Assembly (NCBI GenBank): GCA_002269645.1
Contig: NIVC01001681.1
Location: 62,001 to 126,000, forward strand
DNA length: 64,000 nt
Reading direction: 5' to 3'
Source of the DNA: Macrostomum lignano
Lineage: Eukaryota
Part shown: positions 3,253 through 23,226 of the stretch, piece after piece
Layout: every line of letters starts with the position of its first letter
How positions within the stretch are numbered: position 1 is the stretch's first letter
Position numbers and translations under genes: made by a program
The notes under the pieces: model-generated
Told to the model about the DNA's origin: nothing
Seen by the model: only the letters and a program-made list of their open reading frames with translations
The model's database searches: none

Positions 3253-4929
3253 GCCCTCAGACCTGAACTGACAAACTCCTCGGACAATTCCTGGACCCGA
3301 GCTGACACACTCATAAAATTAAGATTTATTGGTTTGAGCAGAAGCGGTTCAATGCTAAAATTAGCCATTATAATTTTAATGCGCAACGTGCCACACGATG
3401 CCAATGTCCAACTCACGCAATGTTTTCAATCCGACAACATCATCGAGTACTCACAGGTGAGTCAGTTTGAATGCCGCCAAATTGAACAGTCCGAGTGGGA
3501 CTTGAAGCTAGGATTTTGAAGAGCTCAACCGTCTGTGCCAAGCCGGGGAACAATACAGAAAATCAAAACTGACTCGAATATTTAGTGGAATCGAAGTTCC
3601 GTCGCCAGGTGCCGCTTGACGTCTTTGACTCGAAAATAATTTTTGACGCCCCTCAGGGAACGGAGGGCTGGTTGGCGGGGGTGAGGCGCACGGGCCTCAC
3701 GGACTCGCCAACAGGTAGAAACGGTCGCTTCTGCCCCAGAGGGCCTGAGCGGGCCCAGTAGCCATGCGGAGACATGCGGCAACTGCCCACTGGCCAGCCA
3801 AGCTCTGTCGCCTCTGGTGACGCCAGCGCCTTGGCAGGTGTGAAACAAAGATTATAGAAGCATAGCACAAAGACTTGCGGTTGCCGATTGCAATTAAAAG
3901 AAAATATTGAAGAAAATTGTCTTGGCTTGGTGAGGAAAAAATCCTTCTATAGCCCCTACGTTGCCAGGTGCAAGGAGAATTTCAATTTTAAACAAGTAAA
4001 AAACCCCATTTGCTTGTTGCGTGAATGCTAGGCATAACACCCACACACCTTCAAAAGAAAAATAAGACAGAAATGAGAAAAATAGAAAACTTCTAGGATG
4101 AGTCTGATAGCTAATTTTCCCCAGAGATGCGCGAGCAATAAATCCCACAGGAAATTTTACAACTCAAGCCACCAGCCCGAGCAGGCAGTTTATTGCTGCA
4201 GTTGCTAAGGCTGAGGTAAACAGGAAGGATGAAAATTTTTTACTTAAACTGACAAAATATGCGCATGGCACACGACCTTGCAAGAGCAGCGAGAGACAGC
4301 GAGAGTCTTTTACAGCCGGCCGCAACGTGAAGGTGCCTCGAAAAAAAATAGTGAACACTTACAACCCATCGAACCATCATCTCTTTTTATTCACAGTCTG
4401 GTTTTTTATCATGAAACAATCATAGATAGCTTTGCTTTCGCAAGACACGGCATTGCAATGCTCATGCAAAACCATTTAAATTTGTTTCTTTTTTGGATAG
4501 GACTTTGGAAATGTCAGGAGGATAGTCCTGTCCCCCCTCCACTCCAATCCACCTGCTGGCTGTCTGATCCACCCGGCTAGAGGGGAGGGGTTGCGCTGCT
4601 GCTACTTCGTTTTGGCTGGCAGAATATTTTTTAATACGAGCGTATGTTGCCGCTGCCACCGCCGCTGCAACAGGGGGGAAGGCTGGGTTATTGAGCCCTA
4701 CAGAAACCCCCATTGTCTGGTCTCAGCACCAGGAATAACGCGCATATTTTAGACTCATATCCCATTGCCTCCCATATCCCCTGCCTATAGCTGAGCAGAG
4801 TGTAAAAAGGGGTTGCGGGTGCAGGATTAAGCTATAGCAAGCGTTGCTTTTAAAATTGGCTTATTTCAAGCGCTCTGGGCTCGAGTCTCTGCGTCTCTCG
4901 GCTCTCGAGGACTCAAAGGCTCAAGAGAA

Positions 4930-7900
4930 ATGCCTGCAAGCAGCAAGCAGCAGCTGCTTTTGGAGCAGCAGGAGGAGCAGGAGCAGCAACAGCAACTGAA
5001 GCAGAAGCAGAAACTGCAGACTCTGCTGGACCCTGACCGACGCTGGGACGTCAACGACCCGCAGCTTCCAACAGTGAGAGCGCGCCGCCTGACCCTTCCA
5101 CTTGTGCCTGCCCGTATGACCCTGAGAAAGTATTTGCCTGCTGCGGTCTGAGTGTAGTTGGTATATATTGATAGATACCCACATGTGCGTCTGCTTCCCT
5201 CTGTAGACATCTGCCTGTGCGTGTATATATACGAGTAGATAATAATAGAGAGCGCATGCATTAAGCACCAAAGCTGAAAAACACTGCATGTCGTCTCCTC
5301 CCTAACTGCCGCGCAATCTCCAGCCGCAAGTGCCCGACAGCTTCCAGCTGTGGCCAGACGGAGCCTGCCGCTACGCCTATGGAGGCAGGCAGGACGAGGC
5401 CAAACGGCACACCAGCGGCTGGGCGATGCGGAACACCAACAATCACAATGTGAGCATCTTGAAGAAGTCCTGCCTCGGCGTGCTGGTCTGCAGCCGCGGC
5501 TGCCTGGCCCCCAGCGGCAACCCGCTGGCCCTGCGGCCGGCCATCTGCGACAAGGCGAGAAGAAAACAGTGCGGTAAGCGACGGCTTCTGTCTTTCCGCC
5601 TCCCTTCCCGCTCAATTCCGCCCCTTCCCGCTCCATTCCGCCCCTTCCCGCTCCATTCCGCCCCTTCCCGCTCAATTCCGCCCCTTCCCGCTCAATTCCG
5701 CTCCCTTCCCGCTCAATTCCGCTCCCTTTCCGCTCCATTCCTCCCCTTCCCGCTCAATTCCGCTCCCTTCCCGCTCAATTCCGCCCCTTCCCGCTCAATT
5801 CCGCTCCCTTCCCGCTCAATTCCGCTCCCTTCCCGCTCCATTCCTCCCCTTCCCGCTCAATTCCGCTCCCTTCCCGCTCCATTCCGCCCTTTCCCGCTCC
5901 ATTCCGCCTCTTCTCGCTCCATTCCACTCCCTTCTCGCTCCCTTCTCGCTCCCTTCCGCTCCCTTTCCGCTCTCTTCCGCTCCCTCCCCGCTCCATTCCG
6001 CCCCTTCCCGCTCCCTTCCGCTCCCTCCCCGCTCCATTCCGCCCCTCCCCGCTCCATTCCCCTCCCTTCTCGCTCCATTCCGCCCCTTCCCGCTCCATTC
6101 CGCTCCCTTCCCACTCCACTTCAGCCCTTCCCGCTCCATTCCGCCCCTTCCCGCTCCATTCCGCTCCCTTCCCGCTCCATTCCGACCCTTCCCGTCTGTC
6201 TCCGCTCCCTTCCCGCTCCATTCCACCCCTTCCCGTCTGTCTCCGCTCCCTTCCCACTCCATTGTGCTCCCTTCCCGTCTGTCTTCGCTCCCTTCCCCTG
6301 CTCTCTCGTTTCCTGTTCCAAATCTGATTCATTTTAGATCTAATCTATTTTCCACCACTTTTCTCAAAAAATAATACAAGATTAACAATATTTTCAACTC
6401 ATTTGTATCTGAAATGGCGCGCACCACATCTACCAGCTGGATGTACAGGAGAGCGCACAACACTGATCGAATCTGGTCAAGTAAAGAGCGATTCAAAAAT
6501 TACAAGGATTTTTTATAAAAATGAAAGTTTTATAGGCCCACTGTCTCGACTATCTGCGGTTGTTCCGATTCGATAATACAACGATTTAGATAAAAATGAC
6601 AAATTTTGCTAGTTTATGATGAGTAGAATGTTTAAAATATAAAAAAATATTTATATTCATATTAGGCAACACAAAAAGATCTCAATTGATTGACTTTTAT
6701 GTATAGACTAGATCTAGTAGAATCGTAGATCTTGAGGCCAGACTATGGACTAGATCTAGTAGATCTTGAAGCCAGTCTATAGAATAGATCTACTAGATCT
6801 TGAAGCCAGTCTATAGACTAGACCTAGTAGATCTTGAAGCCAGTCTATAGACTAGACCTACTAGATCTTGAAGCCAGTCTATAGACTAGACCTAGTAGAT
6901 CTTGAAGCCAGTCTATAGACTAGACCTAGTAGATCTTGAAGCCAGTCTATAGACTAGACCTAGTAGATCTTGAAGCCAGTCTATAGACTAGACCTAGTAG
7001 ATCTTGAAGCCAGTCTATAGACTAGACCTAGTAGATCTTGAAGCCAGTCTATAGACTAGACCTAGTAGATCTTGAAGCCAGTCTATAGACTAGATCTAGT
7101 AGATCTTGAAGCCAGTCTTTAGACTAGACCTAGTAGATCTTGAAGCCAGTCTATAGACTAGATCTAGTAGATCTTGAAGCCAGTCTATAGACTAGACCTA
7201 TAGTAGATCTTGAAGCCAGTCTATAGACTAGACCTAGTAGATCTTGAAGCCAGTCTTTAGACTAGATCTAGTAGATCTTAAAGCCAGTCTATAGACTAGA
7301 TCTAGTAGATTTTAAAGCCAGTCTATAGACTAGACCTAGTAGATCTTGAAGCCAGTCTATAGACTAGACCTAGTAGATCTTGAAGCCAGTCTTTAGACTA
7401 GATCTAGTAGATCTTGAAGCCAGTCTATAGACTAGACCTAGTAGATCTTGAAGCCAGTCTTTAGACTAGATCTAGTAGATCTTAAAGCCAGTCTATAGAC
7501 TAGATCTAGTAGATTTTAAAGCCAGTCTATAGACTAGACCTAGTAGATCTTGAAGCCAGTCTATAGACTAGACCTAGCATTTCTTAAGCACCAATTTCAT
7601 AAGCTATCAGCTCCATCAAATCGTGAAACTGTAGCCGCAAGCAAACCGCCTATGAACCAATTCACGGACTCATAGAGTTCGCGCAAGCTGGCAACAGCTT
7701 AGCAACCCCCAAAAAATAGTCAATAGATAGTGTTTATCTCTGAAGGAATGGCTGCAATATCTGCTCTCCCCCCTCAGCTTTCAGCGCGACCCCAATTAGC
7801 TGGTTCCCATTTCAGCGAGAGATTCGACACCCCATCTATCGCCTCCCCCCATGAGCCTGCAAGGGCTTGGGAATCACGCAGGGTAATTACCGGTTACCTG

Positions 7901-10900
7901 GCCTAACGGGATGGCACTGCGCTTCAGCAGCAACGCTGGTGCCCCGCCCACCATCTTCTCGGCTGGGGGCAATTTTCTTCTTAGTTTTCCTCACTCATTT
8001 CTCCTCTACAGTTGAGCAGATAGTCACCGGGGCCCCGCCCGGTAGCCGGCTGGAATTTTGTTGAAATTTGAGCTGACAAAATCATTTCCGGCCCCGATCT
8101 GGGAAATGCTCCAGTCGTGAGAGCATTGCTGCTTCACCGATGAGGAAAAATGTTTCTGCATGTCAGTTCACGCTTCCGTCTATCAGCAATGTTGGATGGG
8201 TTCACAAATTGGACACTTCACAAACCGGACACTTCACAAACCGGACACTTCACAAACTGGTCACTTCACAAACCGGACACTTCACAAACTGGTCACTTCA
8301 GAAACTGGTCACAAACTTCACAAACCCGACACTTCACAAACTGGACACTTCACAAACTGGTCACTTCACAAACCGGACACTTCACAAACTGGACAATTCA
8401 CAAACCGGACACTTCACAAACTAGTCACTTCACAAACCGGACACTTCACAAACCGGACACTTCACAAACCGGACACTTCACAAACTAGTCACTTCACAAA
8501 CCGGACACTTCACAAACCGGACACTTCACAAACCGGACACTTCACAAACTGGACACTTCACAAACTGGACACTTCACAAACCGGACACTTCACAAACTGG
8601 ACACTTCACAAACTGGACACTTCACAAACCGGACACTTCACAAACTGGTCACTTCACAAACCGGACACTTCACAAACTGGACACTTCACAAACCGGACAC
8701 TTCACAAACTGGACACTTCACAAACTGGACACTTCACAAACCGGACACTTCACAAACTGGTCACTTCACAAACCGGACACTTCACAAACTGGTCACTTCA
8801 CAAACCGGACACTTCACAAACTGGTCACTTCACAAACCGGACACTTCACAAACTGGTCACTTCAGAAACTGGTCACAAACTTCACAAACCCGACACTTCA
8901 CAAACCGGACACTTCACAAACTGGTCACTTCACAAACCGGACACTTCACAAACTGGTCACTTCACAAACCGGACACTTCACAAACTGGTCACTTCAGAAA
9001 CTGGTCACAAACTTCACGAACCCGACACTTCACAAACCGGACACTTCACAAACTGGTCACTTCACAAACCGGACACTTCACAAACTGGTCACTTCACAAA
9101 CCGGACACTTCACAAACTGGTCACTTCAGAAACTGGTCACAAACTTCACGAACCCGACACTTCACATACCGGACACTTCGCAAATCGGACACTTCATAAA
9201 CCGGACACTTCACAAACCGGACACTTCACAAACCGGACACTTCATAAACCGGACACTTCGCAAACCGGACACTTCACAAACCGGACACTTCACAAACCGG
9301 ACACTTCACAAACCGGACACATTGACAATCATGAGCTGCTGAAAGCTGGCAGCTGTGACACAAAAGCCCGTTTTCGACGCGCTGAATTTGCTTTCATTCC
9401 AGGCAAGCCGTGCCCCAACGCCAAATGCGACGGCACCCTGGTCCTTCAGGCCTGCCGGGGCCATTCCGGCTACCCGGTCACGCATTTCTGGCGCCACCTG
9501 AACGGCTGCGTCTATTTTCAAGCCAAGGGGGCGCACGACCACCCGGCGCCGGATCTGAAGCCGGCTGAAGACATTCGAAGGCGGATGAGACTGTTGAAGA
9601 AGAGCGGCGTACCCGCAGTGGTGAGGGGAGAGTGGGAGACTTTGACAGTGCAAGAGGGAGACAGGGACATTGAGGGAGGGAGAGGGGAAAGGCGGGAAGA
9701 GAGACAGGAAGAGACAGGGAGAAAAGGATCGCATGAGATTCTACCTACCTTGAGATAGGAATCGAACTCGCAACCTATTCTAGGTTCAGCGGCGGGAGCA
9801 GGTGCAGCATCAATTTGCGCAACAACAACAACCGATTGTTAAGAAGGCCAAGAAGCCACAGAGACAGCAACAGCAGCCGCAGCATCAACAGGTACAGAGA
9901 CAGCAGCAGCTGATTGTCAAGAACGCCGTGAAGCCACAGAAACAGCGACAGCCGAAGGCGAAAATCAAGCGCAGGCCTACAGCCCCATCAACCATCAACC
10001 ACCAGCAGGCCCATTATCAGCAGCATCAGCATCATCAATATTATCAGTCACTAATTTGCCCATATCATCGCGTCGACATCGACCAGTGCCGCTGCCGCCC
10101 AGCACCAACGGCTCAGCGTCAGGCGAGCCACCTACAGCAGCAGCTGCTTCACCGGCCGGATTCAACTGGGGCGGTGGCTTCGGCGGCGGCCGCGGTAGTT
10201 GCGGCGGCGGCTTTCGTCGGAGGACCCGAGGCAGCACCTCACGGGCAGCAGCAGCAGCAGCAGCAGTACATCGGAATGCTTCCGTATCCGGGCTTGGGAG
10301 CATCGGTTGGATTCTATGCTTCAGCGCCAGCTGAGCATCGTGAGCAGTTGGAGCAGCACCAGCTCCATCAGCAGCTGCAGCATCAGCAGCACGAGATTCA
10401 TCATCATTATCAGCAGCAACAGCAGCAACAGCGGCTGCCAGCTCCAATGCAAATTGGCGAGAGAATCGCTCTGCCATCTGCAGTGACTGGGCAACACCAG
10501 CAGCACCAGCAACACCAGCAGCACCAGCAGCACCAGCAGTACCACCAGATGCTGTTGCATCGTCAGCACCAGCAGCACCAGCAGCAGCAGCAGCAGTTGC
10601 CACTTTCTGAGTCGCCACCGATCGTTGATCCGGTGACAGACTTCGCCGATCCGTTCTTCGCCTTCTGGCAGTCCAACGGCGGCGGCAGCGGAACGACTTA
10701 TAACTCGGACGGAGAGTCGGCGTTGCTGGCGGAGCTCAGGCCGCACCTGACTAGGCAGCAGTTTCAGCTAGAGGATGAGGAGCCGATCCCAATCCAGCGT
10801 CCGCAGCTTCATCAACAACATCAGCAGCAGCAGCAGCAGCAGTACTATCAAGACGGTCTGTTCCAAGCAAATCCCGGAGGCAGTGCCGCACCCAGCATCA

Positions 10901-11016
10901 GCAGTGCGAGCGTCTTGCTGCCCCTCATTGCCGACGCGGAAGCCGATGGCCACGGCCCGGCCGCCCACCACCTCTATGGCCGGACTTCGCCGACACGACC
11001 GCTGTTCATGGGATGA
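4930..11016 (+). CDS. gcm: GCM-domain transcription factor, paralog A (614 aa), 4 coding exons: 4930-5073, 5324-5573, 9403-9620, 9784-11016
   Basis: Spliced ORF carries GCM hallmarks [80 protein letters not shown], with all Zn-ligand Cys/His present. Three GT-AG introns with compatible phases (0,1,0); total 1845 nt including TGA. Q/H-rich C-terminus. The intron 3 boundaries are the least certain (alternative acceptor at 9801). Confidence 0.93.
5595..6298. repeat. 20-bp C-rich array (CCGCTCCATTCCGCCCCTTC)n, gcm-A intron 2
   Basis: Begins about 20 nt after the donor at 5574. Confidence 0.95.
6702..7577. repeat. 34-bp palindrome-rich array (GAAGCCAGTCTATAGACTAGACCTAGTAGATCTT)n, gcm-A intron 2
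   Basis: Period 34 measured (6841 to 6875). Confidence 0.95.
8201..9320. repeat. 16-bp array (CTTCACAAACCGGACA)n, gcm-A intron 2
   Basis: Direct reading; source of ORFs 8140, 8150 and 8160. Confidence 0.95.
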
Positions 11017-12400
11017 TCTCTGAGACAGTTAATTTTTCACCTTGCCTTTCATACGGAAACACACATCGAAATGATGGATTGCCTCGTGAAGTTATCAACA
11101 GCTGGACTACCAATGAAGGATGGCCAACCCCTACTCTTGTCTGACTAACAATATTCTCAGAGCCCGATCCGGGACGGAGAGTCGCAGGCGCATGAAATGA
11201 ACTCAGTGACCATACCATTTTTTGATAAAACTTTGTAGTTTTATAAGGGGACTTTTGACAATATCTGAAAATCAAGTCGACAGGCGTTCTAATCAGCACC
11301 ACACAAGCCTTACCTACGTGTTTGACTCTCGCGCCACCTGACTCTCGTTGGTTCCATTCCGTGACTGTTCAAAGCGTCAAAAAATTCTCAGAAAACGCAT
11401 TGTTCTGGGATCTGTTGAACTCAAAGTGATTTAATATACCTTCTGTTATTGGGTAAATTTTAGCACACATCAGTTCAGAAGTTTTCGTGAGTTTCTTCGC
11501 CGCTCTATAAAGTTCCTGCATACTTATGTGTTAGCCACGTGCCAATACTGTTGCAATATAATGATATGCTTTGCGCCAACAAATAGAAACTTTTGTCGTT
11601 GTTGTTCAGACTTCGCCGCAGGCAGATTCTGCTTTTTGGATGACAAAAATCCTCATCTGTTGATCGGTTCTGGAGCTGTTGGCCAAATACTCGTAGTTTG
11701 ACTAATATGGCATGGCTCACATTGCATTGCACAGCCATGTCTCCTAACACACACTCATACAGGCACTAATTATTTTATCTTCATTAATTATGCAGCAAAA
11801 TATGGATGGGCCCATGGGGGGGGCGCCAGCACGTGCGCCCAAGCTTTTGTCCGCTGATGAGGCAACTTTACACTGCGCATGACCGCATGGTTGAGACTTA
11901 GAGGAGGCTGACTTCTCCATCTGCACACACACACCACAATGTCCGCCTGACACGTTACCCTGCCTCTTAAAAGCAGGTTCCTCTTTTTCCACTCTTCAAC
12001 AGCATAATGAGAGGGTAGAAGAGCCGAGTCAAGAGTCGTACACTAAAAAAATAACAATTGCATTAGCTATCACAAGCTTCTCGACTGATTAAACTTGAAA
12101 ATTAGACGCTTTAGGGATCGGCTGGCACATGGACAACATCTAAATCATCTGGACTAGAAACGTTTATCCCTTCAATTCATGCTAGCTGTTATAAAACTTT
12201 ATCAACTTAAAATATTTGGATTTAAAAGACCAAGCCCGCATGATTCTTAAAAATAGGAACTCTGGAGACATGGATGGTGACATTCCCCCAAATACGAGAT
12301 GGGTCCTGGGTGTACCAGCACCAGACACCCTACTATCTGCACAGAATTATCAATAATTTCGGAACAGATAAACCGATTTCTACAATCTTGGTCTCATTTT

Positions 12401-12416
12401 AATAAAGTTGAATAAA
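12401..12416 (+). terminator. Tandem AATAAA polyadenylation signals, probable 3' end of gcm-A
   Basis: First AATAAA hexamers seen after the stop at 11016 (12401 and 12411); implies a 3'UTR of about 1.4 kb. Confidence 0.45.
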
Positions 12417-12484
12417 TCTTTCACAACTGACTGAAGTTTTATTGAAGTTTGAAGGAAAATAAGCACAATGTTAGTCAGAGGGTA

Positions 12485-12927
12485 AGAGTCAGAGATGTGA
12501 AGTTCAGAGATGTGAGAGAGTCAGAGATGTGAAGTTCAGAGATGTGAGAGAGTCAGAGATGTGAGAGTCAGAGATGTGAAGTTCAGAGATGTGAGAGTGA
12601 GAGATGTGAGAGTCAGAGATGTTAGAGTCAGAGATGTGAGAGTGAGAGATGTGAGAGTGAGAGATGTGAGAGTCAGAGATGTGAGAGTCAGAGATGTGAG
12701 AGTCAGAGATGTGAGAGTCAGAGATGTGAGAGTCAGAGATGTGAGAGTCAGAGATGTGAGAGTCAGAGATGTGAGAGTCAGAGATGTTAGAGTCAGAGAT
12801 GTTAGAGTCAGAGATGTGAGAGTGAGAGATGTGAGAGTGAGAGATGTGAGAGTCAGAGATGTGAGAGAGTCAGAGATGTGAAAGTTCAGAGATGTGAGAG
12901 TCAGAGATGTGAGAGTCAGAGATGTGA
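12485..12927. repeat. 15-bp array (AGAGTCAGAGATGTG)n
   Basis: Direct reading; gives the spurious (VRVRD)n ORF. Confidence 0.95.
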
Positions 12928-13356
12928 AATTTCAGAATCTGAGACACAGAGATGGAGTCAGAGATGGGATATTAAAAATGCCAAGGCACACGCATCCCCG
13001 CACTAGCAAATTGGGGAGCAGGCATTCAAGAAAGTCACGCCTCGGTGCAGTAAAATTGCCAAATACTGCCGAAATTGAAGCCGACAGAAAGCAATTGCTC
13101 TGATTTCCTGGACTCGGATTGGCACTGCCATAAATCATGGGATTCCTTGCCCCGAACTCTGCAACAATTCGTGTCTCCAACTTCGACTTTGGCCCGACAT
13201 TCTTGAAGATGCTTTTTGTACTTTGTTTACGCACCCTAGAAACTGGACTGGGGAGCGGGGATCTGACTTTTAATGAAGACTATTGTGTGCGTTATCAGAA
13301 GGTGATTGTTTGACCATATTTATTTTTGCGACAGAATTCACTGAGTGTACCTGGCG

Positions 13357-14364
13357 CCGCTACTAGTGTGCTCTATTTGTAGTGTCTAGGACCGCTACTA
13401 GTGCGCTCTAATTATAGTGTCTAGGACCGCTACTAGTGCGCCCTATTTATAGTGTCTAGGACAGCTACTAGTGCGCTCTATTTATGGTGTCTAGGGTCGC
13501 TACTAGTGCGCCCTATTTATAGTGTCTAGGACAGCTACTAGTGCGCTCTATTTTTAGTGTCTAGGGTCGCTACTAGTGCGCCCTATTTATAGTGTCTAGG
13601 ACAGCTACTAGTGCGCCCTATTTATAGTGTCTAGGGTCGCTACTAGTGCGCCCTATTTATAGTGTCTGGGGTCGCTACTAGGGTCGCTACTAGTGCACCC
13701 TATTTATAGTGTCTAGGGTCGCTAACTAGTGCGCCCTATTTATAGTGTCTGGGGTCGCTACTAGGGTCGCTACTAGTGCGCCCTATTTATAGTGTCTAGG
13801 GTCGCTAACTAGTGCGCCCTATTTATAGTGTCTGGGGTCGCTACTAGTGCGCCCTATTTATAGTGTCTAGGGTCGCTAACTAGTGCGCCCTATTTATAGT
13901 GTCTAGGGTCGCTACTAGTGCGCCCTATTTATAGTGTCTGGGGTCGCTACTAGGGTCGCTACTAGTGCGCCCTATTTATAGTGTCTAGGGTCGCTAACTA
14001 GTGCGCCCTATTTATAGTGTCTGGGGTCGCTAACTAGTGCGCCCTATTTATAGTGTCTAGGGTCGCTAACTAGTGCGCCCTATTTATAGTGTCTGGGGTC
14101 GCTAACTAGTGCGCCCTATTTATAGTGTCTAGGGTCGCTAACTAGTGCGCCCTATTTATAGTGTCTGGGGTCGCTACTAGGGTCGCTACTAGTGCGCCCT
14201 ATTTATAGTGTCTAGGGTCGCTAACTAGTGCGCCCTATTTATAGTGTCTGGGGTCGCTAACTAGTGCGCCCTATTTATAGTGTCTAGGGTCGCTAACTAG
14301 TGCGCCCTATTTATAGTGTCTGGGTCGCTACTAGGGTCGCTACTAGTGCGCCCTATTTATAGTA
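13357..14364. repeat. 35-36-bp array (GTCGCTACTAGTGCGCCCTATTTATAGTGTCTAGG)n
   Basis: Direct reading; occasional GGGTCGCTACTA sub-duplications. Confidence 0.95.
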
Positions 14365-15178
14365 TCTGGCGGCTGGCAGCTATAAAATGAAAATGAAAGG
14401 AGCGTCAAACTTCCTAGCATATTTCTACGTAGAATAGATGCTTGCTTTTACTAGTAGATCAGAATCTCAGAGTCTGGACGCCGCTGTCAGACTGCCTGAC
14501 ATGTAGATAACTAACCATGGCCTTGCACAACATTGAGCAGTAGTTCTCTCTTGTTGCACAATTTCTCAATACACGTTGGTTGGGTTCGATTGATGTAGTT
14601 AATTTGTCAGACAATATGGAATCCAACAGTATTCAGTAAGGTGTATGTAAGCTGAGAAGCTCGGGAGTTCTTCGAGTTCGAACTGACGTCAGTGGCGCAA
14701 TTACAATGGGCCACTTTGGAAAATGCTTTGAAATTCCCCGCCCCCATCCTCCACCCAGCCCAGCCTCACTCGTGCGCCTCATCAATCAGGAAGTCCGGCC
14801 ATGTTAATCAGATGAGTCGCGCATGCAAGGGAGACACCTGCAGAGCTGGGAGAAATTTGGGACAACTGCTGGGGGGTCAGCTTTCTCCTACATAGAAATA
14901 TTGTTTCGTGTTTTGAGAACAAGAGAAAGACAGTTGAGCTGAGAAGTCAGCGCCTCAGGCTGCATTCACTCCAGTTCGAAATCAGAACTCTGGCCTTCGC
15001 CATTGCGCAATGCGATGGGATATCGGAATATGTCGCGTGGCGGACCGTCGGCCTTCCCGTCTGACATTCCCCATCAGATTGCCATCAGAGCGGCGGCTTC
15101 CAGCAAATTTTTTGTTCGCTGACCCAATCCATCGGTTGTGCCTGCTCATATGGGAGAGGGTACGCAGCAGAAGAGCCT

Positions 15179-15447
15179 AGTGTTATATAAGCGCGCAGTG
15201 TTATATAAGCGCGCAGTGCTATATAAGCGCGCAGTGTTATATAAGCGCGCAGTGTTATATAAGCGCGCAGTGTTATATAAGCGCGCAGTGTTATATTAGC
15301 GCGCAGTGCTATATAAGCGCGCAGTGTTATATAAGCGCGCAGTGTTATATGAGCGCACAGTGTTATAAGCGCCTAGTGTTATAGGCGCGTAGAGTTATAT
15401 AAGCGCGCAGTGCTATATAAGCGCCCAGTGCTATAAGCGCGCAGTGT
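15179..15447. repeat. 18-bp array (GCGCGCAGTGTTATATAA)n
   Basis: Direct reading. Confidence 0.93.
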
Positions 15448-16311
15448 TGGGATCACCCCGAAGTCTTTGTAAAATTGTCTTTGTACACTATACAAACTAC
15501 TTCTTCTGACGCTGTTTTTGTTGCTGTTAGCAAGAATTCACTCCCAGACCAGTTAATAGCTATAGCTGTTTCTTGGAATTTAAGAAAACAACCAAGACAC
15601 GACTAAATGAATGTGGCAGAACAGACAATGTGACACAATGCAACATCAACTAAACAGCAGTTTATAAAATTATTTTCGGTGTGTGCGTAGACTGCAATAC
15701 AGAGGGGCAAGGCAAGGCTGGAGAGAAAGACAGGAAAAAATATCGGTCGGTGAAGCGAAAGAGAGGTGGGGAGTTCTGAAATCCACTGAGGATCAACAGT
15801 CAAACAGTTGTGATCTGCAAGGGATTCCTCTGAATATGGGTAGTGGGTTTTACTGCTCACGAAGGCTTGGAGGCTCCTCTTACTTCATCTTTCAATTTAT
15901 ATATGGTCGAACTGAAAACAATGGAATCATTGTGCCGGCAGAATCGTGCGGGATAAATGAGGGCTAGAGGATTCTGTTCCCGATGATAATCCATCTGTTT
16001 TCAGCCTTACTGCAACAAGCTGCCCGCAAGTCTGCTTTTGCCGCCCTCTCCCATCTAACCCCCGGTGTTGAATTATCACTTTTTAGCGATCTCGAGCAAA
16101 TTTATTGTCATCACTGTTGTCATTCTGCTGCAAAAGATGAAATAAATCAAACGCTATAGCTCATTCATTCTGCAGTTGTTGATTTTGCTGAACTGCAGAA
16201 ACAGAGGAACATGTGATTAAAATAGGATTAGTGTTCATTCCTTTGGGACTTGGACAGCTAAAAATGACATTAATTCCAGTTTTATTATCCCTGCCCTGTT
16301 CCATTTTAAGC

Positions 16312-16509
16312 AGCGCCCATTCTACATGGCGCTCATTCTACATGGCGCTCATTCTACATGGCGCTCATTCTACATGGCGCTCATTCTACATGGCACTCAT
16401 TCTACATGGCACTCATTCTACATGGCACTCATTCTACATGGCGCTCATTCTACATGGCACTCATTCTACATGGCACTCATTCTACATGGCACTCATTCTA
16501 TTGTACATG
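16312..16509. repeat. 16-bp array (TCATTCTACATGGCRC)n
   Basis: Direct reading. Confidence 0.93.
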
Positions 16510-17274
16510 GCACCCTCTTAGTCCAGTTTTAGCAAATTCTAAATTCCTTACCTAAAGATCGCCACAGAAGGTTGGCCTGGACATTCACTGCTGCCCACCC
16601 CTGCCGCATTGTTGCGGCTAAAAGACAGACAGGTTTCTTAAGATTCACAGCAACACTCGTGTCTTTATATGCGGGATAATTTAAGGATGCGCGCCAAGGG
16701 CTCCTAGCAACAAGCTTTTGAGTCTCCTCTCTGGCTCTCTCCCTCCCTCATCCTGGCCTCGAAGAAGCTGAAGTCTTGGATAAGAATTTTTCAGATTCTA
16801 AACAGATTCCAAGCAAAATTAGAGTTTCTTTCGGTTTTTTCTCGAGTCCCGCATGAAGAATATATTTTTCCTTTGTCATTCGCAAAACCACCGTCTTATT
16901 TTGTCCTTCTCCAAGCCACGTCCCGTTCTCTTAGCCCCAAACCGATATTGGGGTGCATAGGAGTGACTGCGGTTGCAAAACAGGATTTTGAAGCCTTCAT
17001 CTGCAGAAAATATGAGGGCGCCCACAGGACTTACGGAGGCGATTTCTCAATCAAAAAAAGTTTTTTTATCACTTTGGTCTTGTGTGAATTAGATGAACTA
17101 GAAGCAGATTATGCAAAATTAAACCATGGATTGAATCTGAATTGAACTGCCTATGGCCAAAGACCCGATTGACTGCCATAAAAATAAATACTGTACTTTA
17201 TTTAGACACTCTTAGAAAACAACAAATAGTCTATGGTAGTGGTTGGGGACCCGGCTCCGCCCCTGGGGGTGCTT

Positions 17275-17456
17275 TCACAAGGTCGAAAAGTAAATTATTT
17301 CACAGGGTCGAAACTTCACAAGGTCGAAATTTCACAAGGTTCTACGTTTTCTACGTTGTGAAGTTTCGACCTTATGAAGTCCCTTGCTAAAGTTTTCAAT
17401 GTTGTGAAATTTCGACCTTGTGAAATTTCGATCTTGTGAAATTTCGAGTTTGTGAA
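17275..17456. repeat. Degenerate 16-17-bp repeats in two opposite-facing blocks (CACAAGGTCGAAA / TTTCGACCTTGTG)
   Basis: CACAAGGTCGAAA units at about 17276-17340 and reverse-complement units TTTCGACCTTGTG at about 17380-17455. Confidence 0.75.
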
Positions 17457-18219
17457 ACCCCCCGCCCCCGCACCCCCGTCCCTCACTCTCAAAGTGCAGC
17501 TTAGGCAAACCTGTCTGTGGTGCAATATCGTTGATAAACCTGCTTTTAAAGACGTTAATCTGTAACAGAGAGCACTAGGTAAACTTGGCCGACAAAATAA
17601 TTATACTATAATTTTACATTTCAAACAATTTTTGAACGCAACCAAATTTCTACCCGCTACAATATCTGCGCATGTACGTCACATGCACTCGGTAGTGTAG
17701 GAGTGGGGGTTCCTTTCTCCAGATATCTAGATCTGAGCCCCCCCCCCTTCTGTAGAGAAAAGAAGATCTTAGCAGTTTTTTCGGTAGACCTGCTTACAAA
17801 TGAGAATGAGAGAATGGGATGTTGGAGTCTGGGTCAGGAAACGGGGGGGGGTGGGCAGATTCGGTGAAGTCCCGCGGGCTGTCTGCGGACTCACCCCAAA
17901 CCCTGAGCACCAGCATGCTGGTGGATGCGGGAACGGGCTGTATAATGCTTTTAGATGAAGTTTCATCCCCATTGTAGAGATGCTTATTAAAGTCTGCCTT
18001 CTCGAAACACGGATAGCTGGGCTGTATAGGCTATAGCAAATATTTCTGCAGGTGACCTGTTCTTTATCAGGTCCTTTGTCCCTCTCTTTGTCTCTATCTG
18101 CATAGTGTGGTTCTGTTTCGAAAAAATGCTAATTATTTATCAGAATTGTCGCTAAACTATCGAATACTGATGAATATTCTATGCTGGGTCTTGCCGTCTT
18201 TGTAGGGTCTACTTCAACT

Positions 18220-19095
18220 GGAATCCCCAACTCATAATCCCATTTTGAAATCCCATACTTAAATCCCATTCTGAAATCCCATTTTGAAATCCCATACTTA
18301 AATCCCATTCTGAAATCCCATTTTGAAATCCCATTCTGAAATCCCATTCTGAAATCCTATTCTGAAATCCCATTCTGAAATCCCATTCTGAAATCCTATT
18401 CTGAAATCCCATTCTGAAATCCCATTCTGAAATCCCATTCTGAAATCCCATTTTGAAATCCCATTTTGAAATCCCATTCTGAAATCCCATTCTGAAATCC
18501 GATTCTGAAATCCCATTCTGAAATCCCATACTTAAATCCCATTCTGAAATCCCATTTTGAAATCCCATACTTAAATCCCATTCTGAAATCCCATTTTGAA
18601 ATCCCATTCTGAAATCCCATTCTGAAATCCTATTCTGAAATCCCATTCTGAAATCCCATTCTGAAATCCTATTCTGAAATCCCATTCTGAAATTCCATTC
18701 TGAAATCCCATTCTGAAATCCCATTCTGAAATCCCATTTTGAAATCCGATTTTGAAATCCCATTCTGAAATCCCATTCTGAAATCCCTTTCTGAAATCCC
18801 ATTCTGAAATCCCATTCTGAAATCCCATTCTGAAATCCCATTCTGAAATCCGATTTTGAAATCCCATACTGAAATCCCATACTGAAATCCCATACTGAAA
18901 TCCCATTCTGAAATCCCATTCTGAAATCCCATTCTGAAATCCCATTCTGAAATCCCATTCTGAAATCCGATTTTGAAATACCATACTGAAATCCTATTCT
19001 GAAATCCCATTCTGAAATCCCATTCTGAAATCCCATTCTGACATCTCCAACTCGAAATCCGATTCTAAAATCCCATTTTGAAATCCCCAACTCGA
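18220..19095. repeat. 13-bp array (TCTGAAATCCCAT)n
   Basis: Direct reading. Confidence 0.95.
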
Positions 19096-19918
19096 AACAT
19101 GTTTCGGTAACCTCCAACACGGAAGACAACACAAATGAATGAATAGGGTCTATGTTGACGACATTTATTTCATAAGCATGGTTTCTCTAAAGAAAATATT
19201 TTCCTTGTAAACTAACTATAGAAAAATGCTGTTTGTTGTTCTTCGCTTGTCAAAAAGGAAAAGAAGAGTCATTTGCCACAATACAAGTCTTCGATATTTA
19301 TGAGTTTAGAAATATAGCAGAAATAAGTATGCAACATGACTGTCTGCATATAACATGACTAATTGCTTGCAGCCTGCAGGTGTGTGAGTGGTGACTCTAG
19401 AAATTGTTCTTAGACCTTTCCTCTTTCATATCATAGTCTATGGCTTCAGTCGATATTTCTAAATTCTGCTCATAAAAGTATGCTACTATATGCTCACAGT
19501 GATGCAACAACCCCCTACAAGTTATTGCCCCAAAGCCGCGGCCTCGGATGCGCTGTGATGACGCAACCTCCAGTGCTAGTTCGAATGCAGGTGATATAAG
19601 TATTTAATTACTATTGATATCTGCTTATGAACGTCTGACATGTTATTATTATATAGAATCGATCTTGTTCATAGATGACAGTGCGTGAGAGTTATAACTA
19701 TAGTGGACACAACGCAACTGACCTTCAGTAAATGTAAATATGGGCATTTTATATATAATATGATCATCATTAATAATAAATACATGATCTTGCAGTTTTA
19801 ATCTTGATAGACATCAGTGTACGAGTGTAGCATATTTATAGAATTAATATGCAACTCAGGGCTAGCATAAATGAACGATAATGAGCAGTTTCACTAAGTT
19901 TCACTAAGTTTCACAAAT

Positions 19919-20148
19919 CTTGTCACTCCCGGCTTTTAAATGTCACTCTCAGCTCTCAAATATCACTCTCCGATTTCCAATGTCACTCCAGGATCTCCTA
20001 TGTCACTCCCCGATTTCCAATTTCACTCCCAGATCTCAAATGTCACTCCCAGATCTCAAATGTCACTCCCAGATCTCAAATGTCACTCCCAGATCTCAAA
20101 TGTCACTCTCCGATTTTCAATGTCACTCCCAGATCTCAAATGTCACTC
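19919..20148. repeat. 20-bp array (TGTCACTCCCAGATCTCAAA)n
   Basis: Direct reading. Confidence 0.92.
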
Positions 20149-20838
20149 AATATCATAACACTATCTCTCATTCACTCTAATACCTTATCATATTTTATCA
20201 ATCCGAAAGCTATTCCATTGACCAAATGATGTCATTAAGAAGACAAAACCAATTAAAACACTTCGTTTTTTTAATTTTCACATCGCATGCGCCTCGCTTC
20301 GAAAAGAAAATATCGAACTCTTAAAAGTAGCTAATGTACTTTTGTATAATAATTACGAAGGAATTAGTAACTACATGTATAGTTGAGAGGGCGGCAGCTA
20401 ATGAAAGCAAAATGACGGCATTGCGAGACATGCACTACAGCTTGCCAATAAGTTGAAAAAGATAAACAATTATTTACAAGATAGTTGGCGAGTGCAAGAA
20501 TATTCTGATTGGTTTGAGTTAAAGATTAATTGACAGATTGTTGCAGATGATTAGAAGTTATTAGAATTGAGACACAGAGCAGAGCGTTGCATTTAAAGTA
20601 TAATATGGCTGTTATAGTTAGCGGCGCGATAGAGACAGTTCTCAATTTTATGTACGTCAAATAAAATGTAATGTGATATTATGTAAACTGCGCATGACGC
20701 AACATAGTATTTACACTCGAAGTTTTAGCCAAAGCAGATCGCATTAAAACTGTACAATAGAAATAATAAGAATCACAGCCGATTTTGGTTGATCCAATGT
20801 TGGATCTTCGAGATATTAACAAAAGCAATCAATTTTGT

Positions 20839-23226
20839 TCAAGACTGGCCAAGAACTGCGGGCGGCGCCTGCGGCGGGTAGGTGGCCGGATTGCCGTAGT
20901 CATGCAGCTGCTGCTGGAAATACTGGCTGGCAACTGGCTGGCAACTGTTCGCCCAGGCCGCTGCTGCCGCTGCCGCTGCCGCCGCTGTCATAGAGGGTGA
21001 CTGAGAGCACTGCTGCTGCTGCTGCTCATAGTGATGCTGGTACTGCTGCTGATGATGATGATGATGCAGCTGATGCTGGCTCTGGTGGTGGAGCTGCTGG
21101 TGCTGCTGCTGCTGCTGCTGCTGGCTGAACATCTGATGCGTCGGGCTCCAGAACGGGAAGAACGACTCCTGCTGAGCTGCAGACTCGAACGGCATGCCAG
21201 CGGGGCTGCACAGCGGCGAGTCCGGGCTGCTCTTGATGGCGTCCGAGGCGTGCCGGGAGAAACCGCCGTGGACGGCTGGCGGCGGGGTGGCCGGCGGGAC
21301 TGTCTGAAGAGGCTGGTAGGCGGCGTGGTGAGCGGCTGCAGGATGATGCAGCTGCTGCTGGTGATGATGCTGATGATGCTGGTGTTGGTAGGCCGCCGCC
21401 GCCGACTGCTGCTGCAGGTCGCTGTAGTATTGGGCAGGTACGCGATGAGGCGCCGATTCGGGGCTGTAAAAATTCGGATGCTGGGGCAGCTGGCACTGCT
21501 GATGATGCAGCTGGTGCTGAGTCTGCTGCTCCTGCTGCTGATTGTAGGCGGCCGCGGCAGCGGCGACGGCTGAGTGCGGCGGCTGGTAGGCGCAGGAGAA
21601 GGGCGAGCAGCAGGGGGGCGGCATCATGTCCGAGTTGGGCCCCACGAATGCCTGCAGGCGGAGCGCCTTGGCCGGAGGCAGCGGACCGTCGACCTGGTCG
21701 GTGCAGTCAAGGACCGTCGCTGCTGGCCGGCGCTGGAATATTTGGATTGGAGGGAGTGACAATTTTATAGCGGGTTGTTTTGCGTTAAGTATACGCGGAT
21801 GAAGGGGCGGGAGAAGGGGCGGATGATGGAGGCGGATGAAAAGGCGGATGAAGGGGCGGATGATGAGGTGGATGAAAGGGCGGATGAAGGGGCGGATGAT
21901 GAGGTGGATGAAAGGGCGGATGAAGGGACAGAATGAAAAGGCGGATGAAGGGACATATGATGAGGCGGATGAAAGGGCGGATGAAGGGGACAGATGATGA
22001 GGTGGATGAAAGGGCGGATGATGACGTGGATGAAAGGGCGGGTGAAGGGGCGGATGAAGGGGCGAATGAAGGGGCGGATGAAGGGGCAGATAGTGGGTAG
22101 ATGAAAGGGCGGATGAAGAGGTGGATGAAATGCGTATGAAGGGCGGATGAAGGGACAGATGATGAGGTGGATGAAAGGGCGGGTGATGAGGTGGATGAAA
22201 GGGCGGATGAAGGGGCGGATGAAGGGGCGGATGAAGGGGCGGATGAAGGGGCGGATGAAGGGGCGGATGAAGGGGCGGATGAAGGGGCAGATAGTGGGTA
22301 GATAAAAGGGCGGATGAAGAGGTGGATGAAATGCGTATGAAGGGCGGATGAAGGGGCGGGTGAAGGGGCGGATGAAGTGGCGGGCATACATGAGTAGGGG
22401 GGGGGTTAAAAAAATAACTCAAGAACTCACTGCTAAAGCAGCGGCCGCCGGCCTTTTAGTCGCCTTTCGATTGTTTTTGCGAAACTCTTCGGACGGCTTC
22501 AGATCCGGCGCCGGGTGGTCGTGCGCCCCCTTGGCTTGAAAATAGACGCAGCCGTTCAGGTGGCGCCAGAAATGCGTGACAGGGTAGCCGGAGTGGCCCC
22601 GGCAGGCCTGCAGGACCAGGGTGCCGTCGCATTTGGCGTTGGGGCACGGCTTGCCTGCATCATAGATTTGGGATTGTTCAAATAGCATTGAATACCAAAG
22701 ATAGCTTGTAGAATACAGTACTCATAGTAGTACGTTTCTCTATTAAGAATGCAAGAGCAGAAGCCGTCGCTCACCGCACTGTTTTCTTCTCGCCTTGTCG
22801 CAGATGGCCGGCCGCAGGGCCAGCGGGTTGCCTGTGGGGGCCAGACAGCCGCGGCTGCAGACCAGCACGCCGAGGCAGGACTTCTTCAAGATGCTCACAT
22901 TGTGATTGTTGGTGTTCCGCATCGCCCAGCCGCTGGTGTGCCGTTTGGCCTCGTCCGAGTCCTGGCAATAGGCGTAGCGGCAGTGTCCGTTCGGCCAAAG
23001 CTGGAAGCTGTCGTGCCTGTCGGGCTGTTCGATGGGGAGGTTTGGTTTTAGTATAAATTAAGAGTACTTAAATTAGCGAAATTGACTGCGTATTGGTCGG
23101 TGAGGCGGAGGTTTTAGCGCTTACCAATGGCAGCTTGCTGTCGTTGATGTCCCATGATCTCTTGCTGGCGCTAACCTGCTGCTGCAGCTCTGCACCTCCG
23201 CTGCTGCCGCTGCTTCCCAGAGTCAT
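20839..23226 (-). CDS. gcm: GCM-domain transcription factor, paralog B (489 aa), 4 coding exons: 23226-23125, 23024-22775, 22654-22431, 21732-20839
   Basis: MTLGSS...[11 protein letters not shown] | [13 protein letters not shown]...CDKARRKQC | GKPCPNAKC...[10 protein letters not shown]...ALA | RRPAATV...GQS*. Canonical GTAAG/GTGAG donors and YAG acceptors; introns 1 and 2 at the same positions and all three phases as in paralog A; 1470 nt including TGA. Confidence 0.93.
21795..22380. repeat. 12-bp G-rich array (GGATGAAGGGGC)n filling gcm-B intron 3
   Basis: Direct reading. Confidence 0.93.

Follow-up and report, generated by a model that had tools for sequence, protein, structure and literature searches.

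Interlocus conversion between linked inverted duplicates is known from human RHD/RHCE, a tail-to-tail pair with segmental exon conversions; other examples of interlocus conversion are Drosophila Hsp70Aa/Ab and the human gamma-globin genes. In large palindromes, such as the ampliconic ones of the human Y chromosome, inverted repeats are kept alike by intrachromosomal conversion from arm to arm. The two gcm genes of Macrostomum lignano described here, A and B, resemble pairs of the RHD/RHCE type: the paralogs lie a few to tens of kilobases apart on one chromosome, their inverted orientation tolerates associated crossovers, and sharp blocks of near-identity that include silent sites, in tracts of ~100-400 nt, stand in diverged surroundings. 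Unlike in these textbook pairs, the block comprises only the DNA-binding core of a transcription factor and is split by an unrelated intron, and the remainder of the two genes has diverged much further. In palindromes near-identity runs unbroken along the arms, non-coding DNA included, whereas A and B share two ~180-200-nt blocks only, with unrelated introns and spacer; an arm-to-arm palindrome was ruled out, as just 199- and 178-nt blocks are alike.

Drosophila gcm and gcm2 (glide and glide2) are, like A and B, neighbouring GCM paralogs from a lineage-specific duplication. They are partly redundant in function, and the literature searched reports no conversion between them; searches on gcm in Macrostomum or flatworms and on gcm gene conversion returned nothing relevant. 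In a tree of DNA-binding domains A and B grouped together in 200/200 bootstraps, so the flatworm duplication is independent of that in Drosophila. This grouping is also what conversion itself gives, and therefore does not date the duplication. Another comparable pair of gcm paralogs (P0003 and P0020) shares the genome of a snail, the spiralian Candidula unifasciata; the exon structure is again the same, the DNA-binding-domain peptides are highly similar and the tails diverged. Unlike A and B, these paralogs lie on different contigs, their silent sites are saturated, and they show no conversion.

Two convergent gcm genes

The preliminary description of this locus had proposed a pair of inverted gcm paralogs and given exon and intron coordinates for both. 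These hold in the window, by which we mean the whole 64,000-nt stretch analysed: genes A (+) and B (-) have four exons each and are arranged tail-to-tail.

4930..11016, + strand: gene A, gcm paralog, 614 aa; intact ORF, GT-AG introns
4930-5073, 5324-5573, 9403-9620, 9784-11016, + strand: exons of gene A; introns of 250, 3829 and 163 nt
23226-20839, - strand: gene B, gcm paralog, 489 aa; intact ORF, GT-AG introns
23226-23125, 23024-22775, 22654-22431, 21732-20839, - strand: exons of gene B; introns of 100, 120 and 698 nt

Profile searches found the Pfam GCM domain (PF03615) in both proteins at E of about 1e-64 (4e-64 for A, residues 53-190; 2e-64 for B), with scores of 215 and 216 bits, the cut-off being 25, and 138/140 profile positions covered in each. 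Both also matched the mouse GCM1 domain structure 1odh (E=5e-55). A retains every residue column that is invariant or nearly so in a set of 25 GCM proteins, including the conserved cysteines and histidines (C98, C104, C108, C123, C135, C140, C149, H152, H176 and H178 in A numbering), and exon 1 of gene A carries a WDxND motif. By sequence, A and B thus encode GCM-domain transcription factors, members of a zinc-containing family known for specific binding to 5'-ATGCGGGT-3' (PMC2172107).

Intron 2 splits the domain after RRKQCG in both A and B, and the Candidula gcm genes are split at the same place, after RRKQIG; an intron following KQxG inside the GCM domain appears to be the ancestral gene structure. 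The gene structures also agree with UniRef models from M. lignano: P0002 is gene A, with agreeing exon 2/3/4 junctions, P0165 is 100% identical to gene B over exons 1-2, and the exon 3/4 junction of gene B is as in P0121, a frameshifted model. Protein searches with the full B protein, the DNA-binding domain plus flanks, and the exon 2 peptide returned no GCM protein from other Macrostomum species; the matches from the genus were from M. lignano only (P0002, P0121, P0165 and P0275), and the next best were ~70% identical. Assemblies of M. cliftonense and M. hystrix exist (PMC10468722). An exact look-up of P0165 and P0002 in the contig collection gave no match. Separately, P0236, which has a FQLWPDG-type motif, was seen on a 1.2-kb Logan contig.

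The near-identical core and its limits

Across a 343-nt coding core A and B are 98% identical (337/343, six mismatches), encoding 113/114 identical residues. The figures of the preliminary description, 179/182 and 158/161 identical nucleotides with a single S/T change, were reproduced exactly. The core falls into two putative conversion tracts on either side of intron 2, with a stretch of intermediate similarity upstream.

5392..5590, + strand: A copy of conversion tract 1; final 182 nt of exon 2, first 17 nt of intron 2
22758..22956, - strand: B copy of conversion tract 1; 199 nt, 98% identity with the A copy
9400..9563, + strand: conversion tract 2, A copy; CAG acceptor and first 161 nt of exon 3
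22494..22657, - strand: conversion tract 2, B copy; coding part 22654-22494
5321..5380, + strand: stretch of intermediate similarity at the 5' end of exon 2; 82% identity with 23027-22968

A repeat finder and pairwise alignments gave concordant results. The repeat finder reported inverted arms at 5392-5590/22758-22956 (199 nt, 98%) and 9400-9577/22480-22657 (178 nt, 96%). Coding mismatches lie at 5503, 5514 and 5515 in tract 1, which has one more at 5576 (intron position +3), and at 9446, 9464 and 9476 in tract 2; the sole amino-acid change is S in gene A, T in gene B. Beyond 9563 the identity is lost, with similarity fading over 9564-9577.

On the inner side of tract 1, identity continues into the first 17 nt of intron 2 (GTRAGCGACGGCTTCTG, common to A and B at 16/17 positions), 11 nt past the splice-donor consensus, and then stops as first described. 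At the other tract ends there is no extension into non-coding DNA, and outside the 17-nt spill A-B similarity in introns 1-3 does not rise above shuffled controls. The outer boundary in exon 2 is a hypervariable loop before DEAKRH, and that in exon 3 is the domain end after DLKP. The earlier term "exon-restricted" is loose, and confinement to the conserved core describes the pattern better: the outer boundaries fall within exons, in variable parts of the protein, and the inner end is intronic. The first 19 residues of the Pfam GCM domain fall outside the tract and differ at six positions, so the DNA-binding domains of A and B are not fully identical; the two proteins presumably have equal DNA-binding specificity.

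The surroundings had been called diverged or unalignable. For exons 1 and 4, the protein tails and the introns this stands, the exons and tails being barely alignable or unalignable between A and B. The first 68 nt of exon 2 are 48/69 identical by codon alignment and include the 60-nt stretch at 82%. An 11-nt unalignable patch (5381-5391), encoding the variable loop GGRQ/CQDS, separates that stretch from tract 1. Its pS is 0.34 (from only ~14 synonymous sites) vs 0.60-0.72 in the other flanks, and an older, longer tract may have left it behind.

Satellite arrays in A explain why intron 2 is so much longer there than in B (3829 vs 120 nt): they make up 2669/3829 nt.

5602-6277 (period 20), 6725-7577 (period 34), 8201-9320 (period 16), unstranded: three satellite arrays in A intron 2 (TRF)
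21795..22383, unstranded: period-12 satellite in B intron 3, 589/698 nt (TRF)

Pyrimidine-rich satellites of A intron 2 and B intron 3 show a weak similarity (61%), which we judged compositional and not homologous. The window holds no third gcm copy or pseudogene that could have been a common donor.

Silent sites set the core apart from its flanks. Over the 114 codons of the tract dS is 0.058 and dN 0.006; in the flanks, a short sample of 55 codons, dS is 0.98 and dN 0.49, and the exon 3 tail has reached synonymous saturation. In the alignable coding flanks 66/164 nucleotides are mismatched (60% identity), and a maximum chi-squared scan chose exactly the 343-nt segment (6/343 vs 66/164 mismatches), a result equalled in 0/500 permutations. 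Among degenerate codons for identical amino acids, 106/110 are themselves identical in the tract vs 15/24 in the flanks (Fisher p=2e-5). Codon bias predicts an identity of 46% from non-tract usage and 62% from the tract's own usage, the latter an upper bound, vs 96% observed, and 200,000 simulations of it gave a maximum of 88/110 identical codons vs the 106 observed. The dS comparison proposed at the outset has thus come out unequal, bearing out the suggestion of an old duplication with recent conversion: neither codon bias nor purifying selection suffices to explain a core so alike between flanks with dS near 1.

The Candidula pair served as a negative control, in which purifying selection alone acts. 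Its exon 2-3 peptides are ~88% identical (~19 differences in 157 aligned residues), yet synonymous codons agree in only 54/133 cases, pS stands at a saturated 0.84, and the nucleotide sequences are 76% identical. Within-species clustering of Candidula, Nucella and Dimorphilus genes in the tree had prompted us to consider concerted evolution of gcm domains as a general spiralian trait. We rejected this for Candidula on its saturated silent sites; the Nucella and Dimorphilus pairs have protein alignments like those of ordinary lineage-specific duplicates, with alignable tails.

Probable gene conversion and its rivals

The locus is very probably explained by interlocus gene conversion between two old inverted paralogs, in short tracts limited by homology; as gene conversion, it is a clean but ordinary case. 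A and B would be old convergent paralogs that can no longer be aligned in their tails, first exons and introns, and the 114 codons of their DNA-binding core would have been homogenised recently by non-allelic conversion. In the mechanism we infer, a break in one copy would be mended by homologous repair templated by the other copy, at a distance of 13-17 kb in the same chromosome or the sister chromatid. Each tract, of ~180-200 nt, would be limited by homology and end where the proteins vary freely or where intron 2 has diverged. Purifying selection would keep the core competent for recombination and conversion would erase its silent differences, a self-reinforcing loop that would not require selection for homogeneity. 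Inverted orientation makes such exchange safe, because an associated crossover inverts the interval and deletes nothing. Two tracts across an unrelated intron need two events or one template switch, and conversion has probably been recurrent rather than single; the duplication itself is presumably old.

Some other single replacement, in which spliced cDNA or RNA templated the repair, or exon 2, intron 2 and exon 3 were transferred together before the intron turned over, is quite unlikely. It would fit the equal divergence of the two tracts (3/182 and 3/161), as one event predicts, and an identity essentially confined to exons. A cDNA template, however, predicts identity ending at the exon border and a tendency to intron loss, whereas the near-identical stretch takes in the first 17 nt of intron 2 and neither gene has lost that intron, which sits at its ancestral position; after wholesale transfer, the 120-nt intron of B should show inside A intron 2, where no remnant of it rises above shuffles. 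An assembly or polishing artefact, with mis-mapped reads of one paralog or of homeologs overwriting the exons of the other, is highly unlikely, although the species gives reason to consider it. M. lignano is a neopolyploid whose published assembly contains three subgenome copies ~2% apart, with 93% of read pairs multi-mapping (PMC10733133). Its assemblies are known to be error-prone, and the 98% identity of the A and B tracts is of the same order as that of homeologs, so that local polishing errors are conceivable in one assembly. Polishing, however, cross-maps only reads that are already ~90% or more identical, and it cannot turn sequence no more alike than the flanks (60%) into a sharp 98% block. 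Seven tract differences survive, and the introns around each tract are specific to its gene, with no Ns or breaks. The three tract-1 differences also recur with gene-specific flanks in other models, taken here as independent of the window's assembly: P0002 is A-type (CLAPSGNP), P0165 is B-type (CLAPTGNP), and P0121 has LSGPH like B.

That the core owes its identity to nucleotide-level selection on an old duplicate, through codon bias, exonic splicing or regulatory elements, or RNA structure, has very little probability. No part of the protein is more conserved than the one the tract encodes, and the GC3 of the tract is higher than elsewhere (0.87-0.88 vs 0.68-0.76); this rise is compatible with GC-biased conversion. 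Against such selection stand the excess of identical codons over any codon-bias expectation, the saturated silent sites of Candidula paralogs with highly similar domain peptides, the lack of an RNA-structure signal in the tracts (z = 0.33 and -0.52), and an identity that carries on into the intron. To a recent inverted duplication of the whole gene, followed by very fast divergence everywhere except the DNA-binding core, we give almost no credence. Low core divergence is all that favours it; flank dS is ~1, the exon 3 tail is saturated, neither the introns nor exons 1 and 4 can be aligned, and a neutral intron cannot be randomised when silent sites 20 nt from it remain 98% identical. The contrast in silent sites, seen inside single exons, already refutes it.

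Consequences for gcm genes and for M. lignano

M. lignano has at least three gcm genes, two of them with a common DNA-binding core. It is a model for regeneration and stem cells, and gcm function in flatworms is essentially undescribed in the literature searched. Probes, RNAi triggers and guide RNAs directed at the domain would target both A and B. In trees of the GCM domain the two genes falsely resemble a very recent duplication, so dating flatworm gcm duplications needs flanks or synteny.

It is quite unlikely that the locus forms inversion isomers with different promoter-tail combinations, that selection maintains the homogeneity of the core, or both. A crossover in one of the tracts would flip the 13-17 kb interval and exchange the 3' halves of the genes with reading frames intact, joining the promoter and N-terminus of A to the effector tail of B, and the reverse. 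Heads and tails are paired in the other M. lignano database models as in the window. Were core homogeneity selected, both factors would be held on one target set while their tails diverge.

We suggest that the locus is a natural example of conversion and purifying selection feeding each other. Only the constrained core is similar enough to recombine, so only the core would evolve in concert, while the regulatory tails drift.

Two inverted gcm genes with two near-identical blocks

The window holds two paralogs of gcm (glial cells missing), A and B, which are convergent with 9.8 kb between their 3' ends; no further gcm copies were found within its 64 kb. The exon coordinates proposed in the preliminary description yield two intact ORFs with GT-AG introns throughout, and its count of 179/182 and 158/161 identical coding nucleotides with a single S/T replacement agrees with the exact mismatch positions.

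Gene models and inverted matches between A and B
Exons 4930-5073, 5324-5573, 9403-9620, 9784-11016 (+): gene A, 614 aa, intact ORF, canonical GT-AG introns
Exons 23226-23125, 23024-22775, 22654-22431, 21732-20839 (-): gene B, 489 aa, intact ORF, canonical GT-AG introns
5392-5590 (+) vs 22758-22956 (-): tract 1, 199 nt, 98%; mismatches at 5503, 5514, 5515 and 5576 (intron 2 position +3)
9400-9577 (+) vs 22480-22657 (-): match containing tract 2, 178 nt, 96%; mismatches at 9446, 9464 and 9476, decaying from 9564 on
5321-5380 (+) vs 23027-22968 (-): weaker upstream match, 82%

Repeat finder and pairwise alignments agree on both strong matches. Between the weaker match and tract 1 lie 11 nt that are almost without identity. 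In the core, the 343-nt coding part of both tracts, 113/114 residues are common to A and B.

Both proteins match the Pfam GCM domain (E~1e-64, 138/140 profile positions) and the structure of the mouse GCM1 DNA-binding domain (1odh, E=5e-55), and all columns invariant across 25 GCM proteins, Cys/His columns among them, are present. Among M. lignano entries in UniRef, A0A1I8G6F2 (P0165) matches B exons 1-2 at 100% identity and A0A1I8FHY8 (P0121) is a frameshifted B; the UniRef models agree with ours at the exon 2/3/4 junctions. A0A1I8GP91 (P0002) is a chimeric, frameshifted and mis-modelled gene A, in which an upstream exon (3715-3837) and ~160 residues absent from the window are joined straight to exon 2, omitting exon 4930-5073, which bears the conserved WDVND motif. 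A third, divergent gcm gene lies outside the window (A0A1I8GEZ8, P0275); it shares 65% identity with A and B over exon 2 (elsewhere given as exons 1-2), seems to place an intron likewise after RRKQC, is unconverted, and could serve as an outgroup.

Tandem minisatellite arrays, about 40 with periods of 9-61 nt, occupy 23,884 nt (37%) of the window and make up most of its introns and spacers. The spacer between A and B contains a hairpin-like inverted minisatellite (17298-17457; arms of 69 nt at 75%, inner pair of 41 nt at 93%). Elsewhere, a series of long open frames of coiled-coil character (49447-53467, -) has weak, sub-threshold Pfam matches (CALCOCO1-like, E about 1e-3) and probably represents exons of a coiled-coil protein gene.

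Borders and silent-site divergence of the tracts

The outer ends of the tracts lie inside exons. The 5' end falls within exon 2, immediately past the loop GGRQ/CQDS, which is variable among all GCM sequences compared here; the 3' end falls within exon 3 after DLKP, 5 residues short of the Pfam domain end. The inner end lies 17 nt into intron 2, where identity ceases, as the preliminary description had noted. The remaining 100 nt of B intron 2 have no detectable counterpart anywhere in A's 3829-nt intron, which is 70% satellite DNA (2669/3829 nt), and introns 1 and 3 are unrelated between A and B. Two pyrimidine-rich satellites, one immediately downstream of A exon 2 (5602-6277, period 20, CCCTTCCCGCTCCATTCCGC) and the other immediately downstream of B exon 3 (21795-22383, period 12, gene strand CCCTTCATCCGC), show ~61% similarity within non-homologous introns, a likeness that is probably compositional.

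From WDxND through exon 3, 169 codons could be aligned reliably, and on these we estimated divergence per segment.

Divergence between A and B by segment
Tract (core): 114 codons, dS 0.058, dN 0.006
All flanks: 55 codons, dS 0.98, dN 0.49
Exon 1 end: 12 codons, dS 1.19, dN 0.38
First 68 nt of exon 2: 23 codons, dS 0.45, dN 0.38
Exon 3 tail: 20 codons, dS 2.39, dN 0.75

Where A and B encode the same amino acid, they use the same codon at 106/110 tract positions and at 15/24 flank positions (Fisher p=2e-5). When every breakpoint pair is scanned by maximum chi-squared, the segment picked is exactly the 343 nt singled out in the preliminary description (mismatches 6/343 inside, 66/164 outside), a value reached in 0/500 permutations. 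Silent divergence is reduced across the initial 68 nt of exon 2 (pS 0.34 at ~14 sites), a hint of earlier tracts that reached further. In the tract GC3 is raised to 0.87-0.88, against 0.68-0.76 elsewhere, which is compatible with GC-biased conversion and not diagnostic of it; neither tract folds unusually as RNA (z = 0.33, -0.52).

Probable conversion and its alternatives

These data support the interpretation of the preliminary description, that conversion between linked inverted gcm paralogs homogenised their DNA-binding-domain exons. Codon bias is insufficient to account for the codon identity of the tract: the expected value is 46% under the usage of the rest of A and B and at most 62% under that of the tract itself, and 200,000 simulations gave a maximum of 88/110 against the 106 observed. 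Selection on the protein is addressed by a negative control in the snail Candidula unifasciata, whose two gcm paralogs (L002 and L003) were compared as DNA. These have the same exon structure as the M. lignano genes, and their exon 2-3 peptides are ~88% identical over 157 aligned residues, the core stretch being closer still; their silent sites are saturated (pS 0.84, 54/133 synonymous codons identical, nucleotide identity 76%). Purifying selection on a GCM domain thus does not keep silent sites alike, and the M. lignano pattern needs a DNA-level copying process. Three alternatives fit this pattern poorly: a recent duplication of the whole gene, since silent sites are saturated a few nucleotides beyond the tract; a cDNA-templated event, since identity crosses the exon border and the intron is retained; and wholesale transfer of exon 2, intron 2 and exon 3, since no intron remnant was found.

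It is very improbable that the identity is an artefact of assembly. M. lignano assemblies are admittedly difficult: they include three paralogous copies with ~98% short-range identity, and 93% of the read pairs map to multiple places (PMC10733133). However, within those exons the flanks reach no more than ~60% identity, so cross-mapped reads could not have created the block, and seven differences between the A and B tracts persist. Three of those in tract 1 recur with the correct gene-specific flanks in other M. lignano database models, of A type in P0002 and of B type in P0165 and P0121, which counts against an artefact insofar as those models derive from another assembly.

We conclude that interlocus conversion in short, homology-limited tracts fits the pattern. 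Either conserved exon block would offer enough length for strand invasion, and tracts of heteroduplex or of synthesis would stop where mismatches turn dense. The blocks are equally diverged (3/182 and 3/161), which is equally compatible with one repair event with a template switch and with recurrent events at equilibrium. Core divergence, at 1.75% of nucleotides, is comparable to what separates the three subgenome copies of M. lignano (2.2% overall and 1.1% for coding sequence; PMC10733133), from which we infer only that the last conversion may be roughly as old as the recent genome duplication, or somewhat older. As a kind of event, conversion in linked inverted paralogs that is limited to a block held alike by selection is well known; our literature search found no report of it in gcm genes or in M. 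lignano.

Other gcm pairs and the significance of a shared core

In a tree of the DNA-binding domain A and B group together in 200/200 bootstraps, as conversion predicts and a young duplicate predicts equally; the grouping is uninformative without the flanks. No gcm sequences from other Macrostomum species were among the protein-database matches. The same tree shows within-species clustering in Candidula, Nucella and Dimorphilus (P0017/P0028, P0021/P0052), where the tails are alignable and the pairs look like ordinary lineage-specific duplicates; for the pair examined as DNA, that of Candidula, the saturated silent sites favour independent, lineage-specific duplication over conversion. A predicted Ixodes scapularis protein, "glial cells missing-like" (P0001, NCBI), contains a perfect internal duplication of ~175 residues including the whole GCM domain, which reflects either an artefact of assembly or two very recent tandem copies that gene prediction has merged.

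GCM proteins bind 5'-ATGCGGGT-3' via the GCM domain, the sole region conserved family-wide (PMC2172107), and the neighbouring Drosophila gcm and gcm2 are partly redundant (PMC11193209). Outside the core A and B diverge: among the first 19 residues of the Pfam domain 6 differ, and the Gln/His-rich tails are almost completely different, a short FFxFW motif being their sole obvious common element. The DNA encoding the tails (10491-10850 and 21002-21123) is CAG/CAC-rich and of low complexity, which produces spurious inverted matches of 70-80% between the two fourth exons. Judging from their sequences, it is reasonable to suppose that A and B would share one specificity coupled to different effector tails. 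In practice the finding serves chiefly to urge caution when gcm phylogenies are built and when reagents are designed for this model flatworm.
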